64,000 bases of DNA from Ascoidea asiatica JCM 7603 (taxonomy: Eukaryota; Fungi; Ascomycota), in contig BCKQ01000002.1 of assembly GCA_001600695.1 (NCBI GenBank), forward strand, positions 827,184 through 891,183. Direction: 5' to 3'. Each line of letters begins with the position of its first letter. The stretch's first letter is position 1. Shown here in pieces: positions 6,463-62,682 of the stretch. The notes below the pieces were generated by a model, which was not told the origin of the DNA, ran no database searches, and saw nothing but the letters and a program-made list of their open reading frames with translations. The translations under genes and the position numbers were made by a program.

Positions 6463-7388
6463 TATTTGTCTATAATTATTTGAAATTTTATAGCTATTTT
6501 TATTTCTATATCTAGAGGTGTATCTGACTCTTAAGATACCGTTATTGAAGTTAGAAATTATTAATGATTTATAAACATGTAATTGAAAAGAATATATATA
6601 TTCACTTTATTGAAAATAATGAAATTTAGATATAATTGGATTTGTTAAAAAAAAAAAAAAGTAATTTAGGTTAATTGATGAATAGCTAAATAAGTAGCTA
6701 GAGTATGAAATTGGATCCAAATGGAGAAAAAAAAAAAAGGATTTGGTAATAGCAAATAAGAGTCCTTTGAGTAGTACTTCCTGGTGAAATGAAAGAAAAG
6801 AAAAGAAAAGTACTCACACAAGAACCTAAAGAACTGGAAGTAGAAGCAGAAGAAGCAGAAACTGAAGAACAAAAGAAACAAAAACATAAAAAGCAAAATG
6901 AGAGCCGAATGAGAACTCAAAAAGAGAAAGAGAAACAGGAAAAGCATGCGCGTTTGTTTACAAGCAAAATGCAGCGGGTCCTGAGGCGGGTGAAGTTTAA
7001 AAAAGGAGGCTGGTGACGCCAGATTTGTGGTTATTTTTTTAATGCAAGTAAATGTTTTAATAGTTAGGGCAGAGTGTAAAATACGTTAATATACAGTAGA
7101 TGACATCCGCCCGGTCCGAGACTCTCGGAAGCAGCCGGCCCCCTCCGTGCACTTTCCCAAGTGAATTTGAGTGGATCTAAAGTTCCAGGTTTTAACTCGC
7201 AGAATGTGATTATATTCTAATAAAGGATTTATTCCTTTGTTTTATCTATTTGATTTATTTAATAATCGATATTGAATATATTTATTCAAACAACTGTCAA
7301 TTATTATTATATTCATTCACCAGTTTTATAAATATTATTCACTTTTCATACATCATCTCATTAATCTGTTGCTACTGCTGTCCTTTGA

Positions 7389-7728
7389 ATGAAGATGGCG
7401 CTTATTGACTTACAACCAATTTCCTTGATTCAAGCTTATCTTAATCAATTCTATCAATCACAAGATAATAATAATCCTCAATATAATCTTCAATCTGATT
7501 CTCAAAATAATTTAGAAACTAATTATTCAAATGATTTACAAAATCAGTCTACTTCTATTTCTAATAATTCTATAAAATCAAATGATGATTCAAACTTAAA
7601 TTTAAAATTAAATCAAAAAAATATTGCAATTAAAGGTTTATATGATCATCAAGTTCAATATAATTATGCATCTGAATTGGATTCAAGCGATGAAGATTAT
7701 TCATCCGAAGCAGAAACTGTAAATTATG

Positions 7729-7781
<53 letters not shown>

Positions 7782-9440
7782 CTTACTAATAGTTCAAACC
7801 AAGTCAATGAAAACAATAATTATCCAATTTTACTAAAATTATCAAATCAATATTTATTATATGAATTATTTAAAATTAATGAAAATTTCAAAGTTTATAT
7901 TAATTTAAATTCAAATTTTAAAACTTCTTTAATTAATTTATTTGATAATTATCTTTTAAAAATATATAATTTAAATTCTTCTATATTCAATAAGACTATT
8001 ATTACTGATAACTTTATTTCAAATAAAACTTTATTAAAATGGTCAAATTTTTATAATTTTAAATATTTCTTTTCAAATTATAATATCTCTAACCAACACA
8101 ATAATGATAATGAAAATGATGATCAAATTTTAATTGATTTTTTTAAAATATTCATTTCCGCTTTAATTATTCAATCTGATGATAATTTAATTCCATGGTT
8201 AAATAATTTAATTAATTTTGAATTATCTAAATCTTATACTAAAATTAATTCAATTAATCAATTATATAATCTATCATTATCTAAAATTTCATATTTACCA
8301 AATTCTGAATCTTCAAATATTATTCAAATTGATAATATTAAATTCAATCCAAATTTTAAATATTCTTATAATTCAAATAATCAATTAATTAAAACTGATT
8401 TATTTATTTATAATCAACTTATTTTATCATATCCTTCAAATTTAACTACAAATAATAATAGTAACAAGAACTCCTTAACTAATATTCAATTAATTAATGA
8501 ATATTTATTAAACTCATTGAATTTAAATAAAAGTTCAATTTTGATGAAAATTAATAATTTTTTAAATCTTTTAACTTTTAATTATACTTCTATAATTAAT
8601 AAAAATTCAAAATTAATCAATTTTCCAGAATTTTCATCTACTTTGTCTTTAAATAATTCAAATTCAATTAAATCTTTTTCTATAAAAAATTTAAAACTAA
8701 TTATAAATAAAAATGAAAAAATTTTTTTTGAAATTTATAATTTAAATAATAGTACTAATGATATTCAAAATGAAAATGATGCTTTAAATGATTTTCATAA
8801 TAAAAGTAAAGGTAAAGATAAAGATAAAGGAAAAGAAAAAGAGAAACAAAAAGAAAATAGAAATAAAAATGACTTCAAAAGTGAAAGTGAAAATGATATA
8901 ATTCAATCTCAAAATAAAAATTACCAATTACCAACTTTTGTTGTATGTTATAAAATAAATAATAGAGGAATTAAAGAAAAATTATCTGTTGGTTCTGGAT
9001 GGGATTATAAAGATGCTTGTGAAAGAAGTTCATTGATTGCAGTTCAAATTATTGATAAAGAAAATGAAATTCCAAAACCATATGAAAAAGAAAATACTGA
9101 AATAAATTTTATTACAAAAGTTGTATTAAAATATGGTGATTCAATAACTTTTAAAAAATTACAAAAGCCATGTACTAAAACTGACTGTTTAAAAAAAAAT
9201 GCAACTTGTACTTTGGTACCTTATGTTTCAGCATGTGTTTTTACTCAAAAAAATAAACATATTATGCTTGGTGTTGGTTTAAGTATGAATGAAAAAGAAA
9301 GTATTGAAAAGGCTTGTGAAGTTACAATTAATTCAAATTCTGATATTTCAATTGATAATGAAAATCCATGTGGAAATTTTAATGGTATGAAAGATGTTAA
9401 TAAATGTGATAATGTTGATTTCAGTGAAAAAGATTTTTGA
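7389..9440 (+). CDS. Degenerate, probably inactive RNase III (Rnt1/Dcr1/Cdl1-like) protein with up to three dsRBD-like domains
   Basis: Collinear matches to recalled S. cerevisiae Rnt1: KVYI~KVYL; TSLINLFDNYL~ERLEFLGDSIL; SNKTLLKWSNFYNF~SNEQIKQWSIMYNF; ILIDFFKIFISAL~LYADVFEAYIGGL; PWLNNL~KWLRKL; NSINQLYNL~NAKRQLYSL. Two C-terminal LxxGxG/GxS + helix dsRBD-like segments. Confidence 0.75.
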
Positions 9441-10146
9441 TACTTGAATCAAACTATGAAACTCTTTGTGTAATATTTCAATTTTGTTTAATAGTTTTAT
9501 ATGATCCCCAAAATATTCTTTTTTTAATTGTTTCAAATGTTTTTTTTTTCTATTTCCTGTTTTTATGGTTTGATTTATGACATTAAATATTCCTTTTTCA
9601 CAATATTTGTTTATATTATTTATTTATATTAATTCTTTCAATTATTATGTTATACAGTATTTAGTTTTTCGCTTTCAAAGTGTCCTCACCGAACTCCGTA
9701 GGTGCTAAATTCTAAACTGTATTTAGAATTTAGGATTTAGAACTTCTAACCCTAAATGGTTTTTCCGAAATAGTTATTCCGATAATTATTCCGAATTGAC
9801 ACAAAAAGGAAAAAATGAAAACAGTTTCAAGGAATGAATTATTGGAAAGGAGAGAATTCAAAGCTTTGAATAAATTCGAAAAATATCTGATAAAAATGTT
9901 CTTAGTAACCTTTTACATTTTCAAATTTGCAACTCAAAAACTATAAATTTAATCTTTTATTATCTATTAAAGGTTTAACTATGAAACTCACTACTATTTA
10001 TATTAAAAAAACTATTTATATAAAAAGAACTACTCCCTGTATTTGGTCAATAATACCATAACATTTAAATTAAGAAAAAAATACGAATTAAGCAACTACT
10101 ATAGAAAATAAAAATTAATTAATTGAAAGCAAATAATTATTATTGA

Positions 10147-15038: not shown

Positions 15039-15617
15039 TTATGTTCCTTTGCTGGGGTCAAATTCAACTGTTAAAAGGTAAAAGAATGCAATAATAAAAA
15101 TTGGCCAAAAGGAAAATATATAAAAAGCCCAGCTAATAATCGATGATACAAGAAACAATATTGGTTTTGAAATTCTTTTTAAATTGAAAGAGAAAACTAA
15201 AGCTAATAGCATGTTCCAAAATCCTAATTTTTCTAAAAAAAACAAAGGTACAATTTTCAAAATGAATAAAGGAAAAGCTAAAAAATTTGAGCATCTCTTA
15301 GTACAATTCTTTGTAATGAAATTTTGTTTAGATATAGCATTGATAACAGCACTTTCACATGCAGCCTCGAAATCACTACCAGCACCAGTACTTAAAAGCA
15401 ATCTCGAATGAGCTATATCTTCTTTGACACAAAAACATTCAACAAATTGGATATCTGAAATTTCAAGTTTTTTTTGAGTGAGCTGAGTAAATAAAATTTT
15501 CCCTTTTGAATTTTTTTCTAACTTTTCTACTATTTTGAGAGTAAATATATTATGGGGCTGCTTGAGGTTATATAAATCTATCGACTCATTAAATGATTTT
15601 CCATCCATTTCTTTCAT
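15039..15617 (-). CDS. dsRBD-like domain protein with hydrophobic C-terminal tail; paralog of a dsRBD in the 7389 gene
   Basis: Good start context (aaataaaATG). QFVECF...LSTGAGSDFEAACESAVINAI matches TFVVCY...LSVGSGWDYKDACERSSLIAV of the 7389 protein. The last ~80 aa are strongly hydrophobic. Confidence 0.6.
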   Translation of the reverse strand: MKEMDGKSFNESIDLYNLKQPHNIFTLKIVEKLEKNSKGKILFTQLTQKKLEISDIQFVECFCVKEDIAHSRLLLSTGAGSDFEAACESAVINAISKQNFITKNCTKRCSNFLAFPLFILKIVPLFFLEKLGFWNMLLALVFSFNLKRISKPILFLVSSIISWAFYIFSFWPIFIIAFFYLLTVEFDPSKGT

Positions 15618-40399: not shown

Positions 40400-41941
40400 A
40401 TGAAAGAAAGGTCAACTGATGCTCAGTTGCTACGATTAGATATTTTAGAATCTTATTTTCTTAAATTACCAACAAGATATTCAAAGACAACTTTATTAAT
40501 AAATAAAAGACAAAATAAATTACTTTTAAAAAATAAGAATGAAGCAATTGAAGAAATTAATTATTTAAAAAAAGAATTAATTAATAAAAAAATATATTAT
40601 TTCATAAATAAATTAAATAAACTTTTAAAAATTTCAATTAAAGAAGAAATAAATAAAATTAATTTAAAATTAAAAACAAATGAAAAATCAAATATTAAAT
40701 TGAAATTAAATGAAAAACAAATTGAATTATTAAATTATGAAAAAAATTTATTAAATTTAAAAAACTCAGATGATTTAGATTTAAATAAAATTTTCAATAA
40801 TGATGGAATTCAAATTATTTCAACACAAAGAATTTTAAAAATTTTTAAGAATTTATTTATAAAAAATTGTAAATTTTTTAAAAATGATAAAAATCATTTA
40901 AATAATGAATTTAATTATATACCTGAATGGGTTAAAGATTCTTTAATTAATGATAAAGATAAATATAATCCATTTAAATTTAATAAAGATTTCAATAATA
41001 ATAATATAATAATCAATTTATTATCAAGATTAATTAATAATAAAAAAATTAAAGAATTTTTAAATTTATCAAAATTATCTTTAAAGATTATTAATGGACC
41101 AGTTTCAAAAATTGATAAACAAATTTTAAATAAAAATAATTTTGAAAAAGAATTGAATAGTGATATAAATAATGATATAAGTAATAACATTGATCAAAAT
41201 TCAATTGAAGATTCATCAAGTGATGAAAGTAAAGTTGAGAATGTTAAAGAAAAAGAAGAAGAAGAGGAAGATTTAGATATGGAATTTTCAGGATATGATA
41301 AGATGATTGTAGCCTCCTCGGATGAAGAATGTGAAGATAATTTAGAATCTAAAGATATTAATTATAATACTGTTACAGACTTAGAAGAATCTGAAGTTGA
41401 ATCAGATAATGAATCGGATAATGAATCAGATGGTGATTCTATGTTTGAGAGTGAAATGAGTGAAAAAGAAGAACCAAAGAAAGAGAAGAAGATAAAAAAA
41501 GAAAAGAGGAAAATAATATTACCAGCACTTACAATTGGATATATTTCTGGAAATTCAGATAGTGATATAGATGATGATAAAATTGTTAAAAAAATTACAA
41601 CTGAACGTAAAAATAGAAGAGGACAAAGAGCAAGACAAAAAATTTGGGAAGAGAAATATGGTAATAAAGCAAAACATTTAAAAAAAGAGATTGAAAATAG
41701 AAGAGAAGAAAGATTAAAAAAACAAAAAGAATTTGAAGAAAGAGAGAAAAAAAGAAAAGAAAAAGCTAGAAATAATCCAAATTTAAAAGAAAAAAGTAAC
41801 TTTGATAAAGATAATAAAGATAAAAACAAAGTTGATAAATTTAAGAGTATTGGAAATAATGAAATGCATCCATCATGGATTGCAAAACAGAAAGCAAAAG
41901 AAGTTATTGCAAATACTAAATTTCAAGGTAAAAAGATTGTC

Positions 41942-59692: not shown

Positions 59693-59777
59693 TTTCGAGT
59701 TTTTTGGTGTTTTCGTGTTTGTTGATGTTTAAATATGTTTATTCGTGTTTATTCGAGTTTGTTTCGTGTTTACGCGT
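59693..59777. promoter_or_regulatory. SCB/MCB/forkhead cluster (G1/S-type UAS) upstream of cyclin copy A
   Basis: TTTCGTG (SCB) at 59711 and 59762; near-SCBs at 59693, 59741, 59751; ACGCGT (MCB) at 59772; TGTTTAY at 59736, 59746, 59767. Confidence 0.6.
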
Positions 59778-59877
59778 TGGGTTCCACAAAGGAGAGCCGT
59801 AGAAGTGGTCTCATTTCTTCAAAAAAAGGTATATCAACACCAATTAAATCTATAATATTTATTCAATCTAAATTTAT

Positions 59878-62013
59878 TTATTCAGAATCTGATCCATCTA
59901 AACCTTCAAATTTGTTTTCTTCTTCTGAACTAAGATACACAACTTCAGGACTTTCCTCATCATTTTCATTATTTTCTTTGTTTTCATCATTTAAAGACTC
60001 TTTTTCATCATCATCTTCTTCCTCTTTTTCAAGTACAGTATTTGAATTCAAATTATTTTCTTCTGATAAAGATTCTACATATGAACTACTTCTTGTACCA
60101 TTTGAATATATACTTGTAGATTCAGATTCTGAATTTGATGTACTTGAATCACTTAATACTATCGGTGATGATATTGGTGATGACCATATTTTCACTTCAT
60201 TCTCTTTTATCTTCACACTATCATTATCATTATCATTATCATTATCATTATCATTATCATTATCATTATCATTATCCGAGGATGACAAAGAAGAAGAACT
60301 ACTGAATGAACTATCAAATTCATCTTCATTATTTAAATTATTTTCATATTCTTTAAAAGGTAAATCTTCATTAATAATATCTTCAAAATTTTTATTATTA
60401 TTTAAAATTTTAAAATTTTTAATATAACTTCTAGTTAATATTGAAACTTTAAAGAAAAAATCATTTGAATATTTTAAAAATAATTCTTTTAAAATAATTT
60501 TTTTATTTAAAAATTTAACTAAAATTAAAATTATATTTTTAATTTCAATTAATTGATTTAATTTAAAAATTTTATTTGAATAATTGAATAAATTTTCTTT
60601 AAAATTAAAACTTTCATTATTACTATTATTATTATTATTATATAATATTTTAAATGATAAATAAAATGAAACTAAAGATAAATCCGAAGGTAAATTATTA
60701 ATTAAATTATTATTTAATAATAAAGTTTCATTTAAATAATTTATTAAAAAAATTTGTTTTTTATTTTTAATTTTATTTAAATTTAATAATCTTGAAGAAA
60801 AATCTAAAATTGTTGGGATTTTAAAAATATTAAAATTAAATAATTTTAAAATTTTTAATTCAAATTTTAAAATTTTTTTAATTGAATAAAAATTTAAAGT
60901 TTCATTATTAAAATTTTCAATACTTGGAAATAAATTTTCAAAAAATTTACAAGAAATAAATAATGAAGTTATACCTAATAATTGTAAATTTTTAATTTTA
61001 AAATTTTTATTTAAATTATAAATTGATAAATATTTATCAATTAAATTTATTGTTAAATATAAAGTTTGAGGAGATAAATTAAATTTTAAATGAATTTCAA
61101 TTAACCAATCATTTAATATTGATCTCATTTTATTATTTAAATTTTTATGTTTATTATAACAATTTAAATTTGGTAATGAATTTTTTGAATTGAATTGTAA
61201 TTTATATAAATAATTAAATAAATTTGAATTTGAATCATTATTTATAGATATATAATCAAAATAATAAGAATTATTTATAATATAATCAAGATAATCATCT
61301 CTTGTTAATTGATTTTTCTTTTCTATATAATTATCAATATGATGATAATTGTTTTCGTTATTGTTATTGTTAGTATTAGTATTATTATTATTAATTGAAT
61401 GAAGTTGAGGAATTGGATAAATTTTATCTTTTAATGGTGTTCTATTCTTAATATTATTTGTATTAATTGTATTAATTGGACTAATACTTTTATTTAATTT
61501 AAAGTTATTTTTAGTTAAACTTGAATTTGAATTTAATTTTGAATTTAATTTTTGTTTTTTAATTGAATTTTCAATATTTATATCATTATCATTATTAATA
61601 ATAGGAATGTTATTATTAATAGATAATTTTTTTTTTGAATTTGGAGTAATTAAAACATTAAATTTTCTTTTTTTTAAAATTGTTGGACTTGAATCTAAAT
61701 TTGAATTTAAAAATTTATTTATAATAATATTATCTTTCTCTTTATTATCTTTGTTATCTTTGATATTTTTGATATTATTATCATTATCTTTTAAAATAAT
61801 TAGAGATTTTGGACTTTTATTTATATTTTCAGTTAAATCAGATAATGCATTTCTTTTTAAATATTTATTTGGACTTTTTAAAGGATTTAAAAAATTAATT
61901 TTATTTTTACTATTATATATTTTATTTATATTATTTTCATCATTTATGTTACTTTTATTATTATTATTAATATTTGATAATTTTATAGGACTTTTTCTTC
62001 TTGGAGGAGTCAT
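59878..62013 (-). CDS. Divergent B-type cyclin, copy B, with acidic C-terminal extension
   Basis: D-box RNALSDLTEN; MRSILNDWLIEIHLKFNLSPQTLYLTINLIDK; LQLLGITSLFISCKF; LKYS..FFKVS. Confidence 0.88.
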   Translation of the reverse strand: MTPPRRKSPIKLSNINNNNKSNINDENNINKIYNSKNKINFLNPLKSPNKYLKRNALSDLTENINKSPKSLIILKDNDNNIKNIKDNKDNKEKDNIIINKFLNSNLDSSPTILKKRKFNVLITPNSKKKLSINNNIPIINNDNDINIENSIKKQKLNSKLNSNSSLTKNNFKLNKSISPINTINTNNIKNRTPLKDKIYPIPQLHSINNNNTNTNNNNNENNYHHIDNYIEKKNQLTRDDYLDYIINNSYYFDYISINNDSNSNLFNYLYKLQFNSKNSLPNLNCYNKHKNLNNKMRSILNDWLIEIHLKFNLSPQTLYLTINLIDKYLSIYNLNKNFKIKNLQLLGITSLFISCKFFENLFPSIENFNNETLNFYSIKKILKFELKILKLFNFNIFKIPTILDFSSRLLNLNKIKNKKQIFLINYLNETLLLNNNLINNLPSDLSLVSFYLSFKILYNNNNNSNNESFNFKENLFNYSNKIFKLNQLIEIKNIILILVKFLNKKIILKELFLKYSNDFFFKVSILTRSYIKNFKILNNNKNFEDIINEDLPFKEYENNLNNEDEFDSSFSSSSSLSSSDNDNDNDNDNDNDNDNDNDSVKIKENEVKIWSSPISSPIVLSDSSTSNSESESTSIYSNGTRSSSYVESLSEENNLNSNTVLEKEEEDDDEKESLNDENKENNENDEESPEVVYLSSEEENKFEGLDGSDSE

Positions 62014-62682
62014 TATTAATATACTTTTATATGAAATTGGTATGAATCTTTAAAGATAGTTAAGTAAGTGGATTGAATTCGAAAGCAAAAAAGGATAGGG
62101 AATATAATATAGTTGATTCAAACAAGCTTCAAATGATGATGGCTCTGATGCTTCTGGTGTTACTTCTGGTGTTACTTCTGATGGTGGTTCTAATGATGGT
62201 TGTGTTGGCGGTTGTGGTTCTGATTCTGGGGATTCTGAATGTGGTTGTTATAAAAGAATCTGAGACTGAAGAAATTGAATCTAAAGTGTGAAGCGATCCG
62301 AATTTGAATTGAACGCTGCTGGATTTGAGACTGAGCGTGAAACAGAACCAAAACAAATGAAAACAAAACAAAGAAGGAGCAGACGGCGCACGTGAAAGTA
62401 ATCAAATGACCGTGACAATAAAAAAGATATTGCACGCAGTACTGCGCAAACACCGCTTCTGTTGCAGTATGCACACGGTGTAGAATTGAACACGAATATA
62501 CTTTTGAATACATCTTTATCCTCGGCTGATTGGAGAGGGTTTGATTCGATTGATTTAGCCCCATTGGACCCGTACAAATGGCTACAGGGTTCACTGCGGC
62601 GTGTTTGGTCCTGACTGGTGGACAACGTTATTGGGCCATCTCTTGTTTTGGTGAGTATTTAACAAGGTCTGTATACAATTCT

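Follow-up and report, generated by a model that had tools for sequence, protein, structure and literature searches.

An open reading frame at positions 7,389 to 9,440 of the window (the whole 64,000-nucleotide stretch of Ascoidea asiatica JCM 7603 DNA analyzed here) encodes a protein that has the fold of RNase III and has lost its metal ligands. It belongs to a set of nine large paralogous frames in which lysine commonly stands in place of a catalytic glutamate, and in which dsRBD-like units follow the nuclease fold. Our tentative reading, to which we give a probability of roughly 40%, is that these genes make up a birth-and-death family of non-catalytic dsRNA binders that may recognize foreign RNA. 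The features on which this reading draws, and one related fragment elsewhere in the window, are as follows.

7101-7200, no strand: GC-rich island, 56% in 100 nt, between the frame and a divergent DAP2-like gene
7389-9440, plus strand: pseudo-RNase III gene with three dsRBD-like units, an intact single-exon frame of 683 aa
7389-7817, plus strand: low-complexity N-terminus rich in Asn, Asp and Ser, with a poly-Asn run and without the Rnt1 N-terminal domain PF18497
7818-8234, plus strand: catalytically dead RNase III domain, aa 144-282, from profile and structure matches
7920-7955, plus strand: degenerate signature helix, with Glu replaced by I182, Gly replaced by F185, and D186 in an ambiguous register
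8124-8147, plus strand: second acidic cluster, with Q246 at the Rnt1 Lys, D250 kept, and the catalytic Glu replaced by K253 (AAA at 8145)
8235-8543, plus strand: unit 1, a degenerate dsRBD-like stretch at aa 283-385, with weak support
8670-9062, plus strand: dsRBD 2, aa 428-558, like the first dsRBD of Rnt1/Dcr1 in type, from structure and profile
8754-8924, plus strand: 57-aa charged insertion inside dsRBD 2, found in this frame and one paralog
9096-9338, plus strand: dsRBD 3, aa 570-650, closer in type to the second dsRBD of Dcr1, with a loop that contains Cys
15039-15617, minus strand: family fragment, a 192-aa frame that holds a single unit of the dsRBD-2 type and ends in a hydrophobic tail (E=5.7e-5)

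Judged from its sequence, the frame is a real gene that evolves like a constrained one. Its positions, as given in a preliminary description of this DNA, were confirmed by recomputation, and it has 683 codons. A chance frame was rejected, as the longest frame in shuffles of its bases reached 117 codons. An assembly artefact was rejected as well: contigs from two sequencing runs are identical to positions 7,794 to 10,100 with 0 differences, though they are possibly the source of the assembly itself. GC content is 18% overall and 0.25, 0.22 and 0.08 at the three codon positions, like the neighboring DAP2-, KAP120- and VPS1-like housekeeping genes. Among single changes to the frame, 6.3% create a stop, and the end branch of its protein in our tree is 0.88 changes per site long, from which we infer that an unconstrained frame would have closed. 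NG86 dN/dS among family members is near 1 but saturated, and codon-position distances were used in its place. Between the frame and each paralog, with base make-up corrected, second positions have diverged by 0.44-0.74 and third positions by 0.88-1.72, which makes second positions about half as diverged as third. Thirty-six alignment columns are common to at least seven family members, and these mostly hold helix-core residues. Comparison of a paralog with its own relics gave no clear third-position excess.

The GC-rich island lies about 200-290 nt upstream of the frame, and similar islands precede the neighboring housekeeping genes, so that it is a probable promoter. A 183-nt, depth-2 match to the gene in another organism's sequencing run resembles carry-over. 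The preliminary description had assigned the DNA to a CUG-Leu yeast. [quoted passage not shown]

Taken singly, the protein found no match in Pfam or the PDB. A profile built from it and seven paralogs gave Rnt1 as its best PDB match (4OOG, E=6.4e-4), followed with weak E-values by the dsRBDs of Staufen, PKR and PACT. Against an alignment of Rnt1 and Dcr1, the family profile scored 84.7% in hhalign (E=6.7e-6, 137 columns), with K253 on the bridging glutamate. An AlphaFold model made from family sequences only had a mean pLDDT of 60.9, with 70-88 in its ordered parts; its top Foldseek and VIA matches were the P. stipitis Dicer (Foldseek E=4.5e-4), Rnt1 and K. polysporus Dcr1. The nuclease fold alone matched K. 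polysporus Dcr1 with Z 9.1 and rmsd 3.8 over 105 residues. Profile and model thus bear out the pseudo-RNase III fold that had been proposed, and with Dicer, Rnt1 and Dcr1 at the top of the structural matches the objection that no such fold would be predicted fails. As single members of the family are invisible to Pfam, similar families have perhaps been missed in other yeasts.

The residues named in the preliminary description (I182, D186, N212, Q246, D250 and K253) were numbered correctly, and both catalytic glutamates are indeed lost, with I182 and K253 in their places. Of the two aspartates said to be kept, D250 stands; the register of D186 is ambiguous because the signature helix is 4-7 residues shorter than in the paralogs and two aligners place the gap differently. 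D250 and N212 are retained in this protein alone among the paralogs. It has neither the four acidic metal ligands nor an intact dimer helix, F185 occupying the place of the signature glycine in the Rnt1 register. The frame has no match to the N-terminal domain PF18497, whose significant matches in the genome fall solely at two other RNase III genes, those on contigs C30 and C17. Dcr1 and Rnt1 (PDB 7DEY, 3RV0, 4OOG, 5T16) are its closest relatives by fold and profile, and dsRBDs 2 and 3 correspond to the first and second Dcr1 types. Unlike them, it is without both glutamates, the accessory lysine, the signature glycine and the N-terminal domain, and an additional unit follows its nuclease fold.

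Up to three dsRBD-like units had been proposed, and two of them hold up in both structure and profile. Support for dsRBD 2 is solid: its modeled structure matches TRBP dsRBD3 (Z 8.4, rmsd 2.7, 72 aligned), in profile comparison it scores 87% (E=3.6e-6) against the first dsRBD of Rnt1 and Dcr1, it is the most conserved C-terminal part of the family, and it retains the lysine and arginine of the Rnt1-type last helix. For dsRBD 3 the support is moderate. Folded alone it draws dsRBDs throughout its match list, with Z 6.5 to 7DEY; the top Foldseek rows are Rnt1 at E 0.2, and its profile scores 50% to the second dsRBD of Dcr1. Unit 1 is weakly identified as a dsRBD: the AlphaFold model predicts a strand-strand-strand-helix order and its language-model neighbors are dsRBDs at 0.82, scores reachable by chance, and comparison with dsRBD profiles gave no sequence-profile support. 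In the dsRBDs of the frame, aromatic and acidic residues have taken the place of most canonical KKxAK lysines. The layout, thought unusual, is not unique, as the third dsRBD is shared with three paralogs. Functional weight for the Cys-rich loop in dsRBD 3 was rejected, the loop not being conserved in paralogs.

We searched the Ascoidea asiatica JCM 7603 genome (20,313,720 bases in 71 contigs, a draft with gaps) for related genes. The nine large family frames, including the one described here, are 23-33% identical, with four on contig C2, two on C36 and one each on C45, C57 and C14. There are in addition at least five relic loci, on C36, C48, C57, C66 and C45; all family counts are lower bounds. 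Damage affects several of the large frames: a copy on C2 has a broken 5' end, and that on C45 carries a frameshift that may be a mutation, an assembly error or recoding. Paralogs with particular structures are located as follows.

L024:6175-7881 and L024:5892-6203, minus strand: C45 paralog, in which the frameshift parts the third dsRBD from the main frame
L020:6743-9382 and L020:4011-5822, minus strand: tandem paralogs with a Ski2 arch (PF21409), at about 2010000-2015400 of contig C2

Duplication is recent or ongoing, given that the young relics at L039 (contig C66) and L025:4237-4971 are 81-89% identical in DNA to the C36b paralog. The C14 paralog (L045:4716-6176, plus strand) is the most basal-looking, and in it both acidic residues of the second cluster are lysine. 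The signature glycine is replaced by Phe, Thr, Ser or Trp in all eight members that span the motif. For the fragment at 15039-15617, we found no RNase III part or upstream relic and no DNA-level match to the main frame; the C57 paralog likewise ends in a hydrophobic stretch.

A word search of 5.8 billion proteins with the protein and the family alignment found no relatives of the family, and the family profile, run with HMMER against all of 1.84 billion representatives, gave 0 matches. The family appears to evolve fast and is, provisionally, found only in the Ascoidea asiatica genome, a restriction that is provisional because the 1.84-billion collection is without the host's own proteins and unannotated close relatives lie outside its scope. 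The frame itself is less singular than had been supposed, as it shares both its layout and its Glu-to-Lys change with paralogs. Dead RNase III proteins are already known (Cdl1, RNC1, KREPB4-10, mL44), including ones with a basic residue at the catalytic glutamate. In the literature searched, which took in few subscription journals, there was no account of an expanded family of dead RNase III genes in a yeast, of this layout or of a fusion to the Ski2 arch.

The change from glutamate to lysine at the position of E. coli E117 and Aquifex E110 was borne out, with K253 aligned to the bridging glutamate. Lysine occupies this column in seven of the nine paralogs and is always encoded by AAA, and only two of 39 Lys-dominated columns reach seven members. 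The change is an old trait of the family, and likely a selected one. Part of this conservation may be bias: at 18% GC no change comes more easily than GAA to AAA, and AAA acts as a mutational sink; AT pressure both favors the codon and preserves it. To call the change a classic case of binding without cutting is an overstatement. The rnc70 protein (E117K) is an otherwise intact enzyme with a single change (PMC10037077, PMC3621894), whereas here the changes extend to the signature glutamate, the glycine (F185), the length of the helix and the N-terminal domain. RNase III with E117K binds but does not cleave, and it gives plants protection against a dsRNA virus (PMC3621894). Like the protein studied here, rnc70 and Aquifex E110K have lysine at the glutamate that bridges both metal ions, but they are engineered single mutants that form intact dimers with proven binding, while in our protein the site and the dimer helix are remodeled and binding is putative. 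By analogy, a closer natural precedent than rnc70 is the trypanosome set KREPB6, KREPB7 and KREPB8, also a natural paralogous family of pseudo-RNase III proteins with a basic residue, an essential arginine, at the catalytic glutamate position (PMC6800513). Pseudo-RNase III dimerization in KREPB6-8 needs the signature glycine, for which valine is no substitute (PMC6800513). Unlike the Ascoidea family, KREPB6-8 keep that glycine and work in pairs with active endonucleases; they are essential, their number is stable, and none has tandem dsRBDs. Further non-catalytic RNase III folds that serve in RNA binding, chloroplast RNC1 (PMC3867540) and mitoribosomal mL44 and mL57, differ from the family in being old, conserved, single-copy organellar proteins. 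The Ascoidea genome has its own mL44- and mL57-like genes, and this identity was rejected for the frame.

Budding yeasts have been described with one to three RNase III genes. The genome check for an active RNT1 or DCR1 found an intact enzyme gene on C30 (L027:7699-9693, plus strand). Its product keeps the four acidic residues and the N-terminal domain and has two dsRBDs; the gene is the sole intact Dcr1/Rnt1-type gene of the genome. A broken tandem copy with 85% DNA identity (L027:4505-6407, plus strand) precedes it; in this copy a part of the N-terminal domain occurs three times and the signature residues are altered. Two further Dcr1-like genes are dead and have two dsRBDs each: C6 (L029:2975-5377, plus strand, 801 aa) keeps the signature glycine and has no PF18497 match, and C17 (L044:3868-6312, minus strand, 815 aa) keeps PF18497 and has a barely recognizable nuclease fold.

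Unrooted trees were made from the nuclease fold and the next domain, with the 5'-broken C2 copy and Candida Cdl1 left out. With C17 omitted, a branch at 99/99 separates the eight family rows from the others; with it included, seven form the starred clade, and the tree does not settle the placement of C14 and C17. A clade of the frame with C6 is rejected (p-AU 3e-8) and one with C17 is not (p-AU 0.084), in a comparison where the frame and C17 are both long, composition-biased branches. Simple orthology to Cdl1 had been foreseen as the finding that would make the gene less novel. The separate C30 enzyme and the two Cdl1-like genes, C6 and C17, argue against it; nine paralogs exclude a one-to-one relation in practice, and the clade with C6 was rejected, in a tree that held no Candida Cdl1. 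To our knowledge, no function has been found in more than ten years for Cdl1, the single dead budding-yeast RNase III. Candida Cdl1 (PMC3579876, PMC11047096) is likewise a budding-yeast RNase III relative with altered catalytic residues and dsRBDs that exists beside an active Dcr1, but it is a single gene with the Dcr1 layout and two dsRBDs, while the gene described here is without the N-terminal domain and has three units and some nine paralogs.

Two of the tandem paralogs have captured a domain of another RNA-handling protein. Ski2, the antiviral helicase of the exosome, touches both RNA and the ribosome through its arch. Both paralogs end in the beta-barrel of this arch (PF21409, E=8.8e-10 and 6e-6; PDB 4A4K). 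The copy at L020:6743-9382 is an intact frame of 880 codons with a Lys/Glu repeat insertion, and that at L020:4011-5822 is the one broken at its 5' end. A separate full-length SKI2-like frame of 1293 codons lies on C1. The fusion is confined to these paralogs and is not present in the main frame.

We propose that the family descends from a two-dsRBD gene of the Dcr1/Cdl1 type. Loss of the N-terminal domain and of the catalytic residues, together with the gain of a third dsRBD-like unit, would have preceded the spread of this gene by birth and death within the lineage. The dsRBDs may clamp double-stranded or structured RNA, a proposal that draws on the lysine and arginine kept in dsRBD 2, and the lysine at the former metal site may touch the phosphate backbone instead of binding Mg2+. 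RNA would then be held or marked without being cut, probably by a monomer or a non-canonical oligomer. The weakest step is the role. Most probably it would be an Argonaute-independent defense in which the RNA of viruses or retroelements is sequestered or passed on to Ski/exosome decay. That the RNA is foreign is a guess prompted by the rapid divergence, the births and deaths, the shuffling of the Ski2 module and the precedent of plant protection (PMC3621894). A non-catalytic binder is supported by the RNase III fold with its dsRBDs, the lysine column, the codon-position pattern, the nine paralogs with their relics, the 99/99 branch, the Ski2-arch fusions and the E117K and KREPB6-8 precedents; it is weakened by the replaced KKxAK lysines, the many broken copies, the AAA bias and the restriction of the Ski2 fusion to paralogs. 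A bolder version, in which the family would be a lineage-specific, Argonaute-independent dsRNA immune system whose diversifying non-cutting Dicer derivatives recognize viral or retroelement RNA, and in which some of them, fused to the Ski2 arch, would send that RNA to decay or stop it at the ribosome, seems to us doubtful. A genome search for a totivirus polymerase relic recovered none, and its control also gave no match.

The replaced lysines also fit a different account, in which the dsRBDs are of type B, like TRBP dsRBD3 or Staufen dsRBD5, and the protein is an interaction scaffold that has lost RNA binding. Among dsRBD-only structures, unit 2 is best matched by TRBP dsRBD3, Loqs dsRBD3 and Staufen dsRBD5, and the RNase III domain is charge-neutral, with 11 basic and 12 acidic residues. 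Yet the Z gaps among these dsRBD matches are within about 1, which is a tie; the RNA-binding dsRBD of Rnt1, which unit 2 most resembles by profile, is also without the canonical motif; and the capture of a Ski2 arch by paralogs points to RNA. We regard a scaffold as doubtful too. Nor is it likely that the protein regulates the C30 enzyme, whether as a heterodimer that nicks one strand or as a competitor for rRNA or snoRNA substrates, in the manner of KREPB6-8. Such an enzyme exists, the basic residue at the catalytic glutamate follows the KREPB6-8 pattern (PMC6800513), and helix-core positions are conserved across the family. But the dimerization glycine (PMC6800513) is lost in every motif-spanning member, which disfavors the heterodimer with Rnt1 or Dcr1 that the preliminary description had suggested; the helix is shortened and the N-terminal dimerization domain absent in the frame; and the Cdl1-like C6 gene, which keeps the glycine, is a better candidate partner.

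Modulation of RNA interference, also suggested there, is left without a pathway, since no Piwi domain was found in the genome (draft, with gaps) by a profile search whose controls were positive. PAZ and ArgoN were blank genome-wide as well, but their controls gave no match either. The blank Piwi search agrees with most Saccharomycotina being without RNAi (bioRxiv 2025.04.25.647736), and such a role is very improbable, even though the two dsRBDs of the C30 enzyme are arranged as in budding-yeast Dicers. Finally, the frame could be functionless debris, a slowly decaying survivor among the dead copies of a duplication-prone genome. Many copies are frameshifted or truncated, the active gene has a broken tandem copy, branches are long, and NG86 dN/dS, though saturated, is near 1. 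We consider this improbable: the 683 codons have stayed open in spite of the frequency of stop-creating changes and the length of the end branch, all larger insertions are in frame and in loops, and the codon-position pattern is that of a constrained gene. If the copies were merely decaying duplicates, they would be a curiosity of one genome. A yeast with a dozen or so dead RNase III genes, a common Glu-to-Lys change, captured Ski2 arches and no detectable Argonaute offers a natural series in which to ask about the role of dead Dicers, and it would be a candidate for RNA defense after the loss of RNAi.

Elsewhere in the window, long frames lie on the strand opposite to genes at 41365-41922 (minus strand), 59726-60424 (plus strand) and 61421-62050 (plus strand), and these are probably by-products of low-complexity coding sequence.
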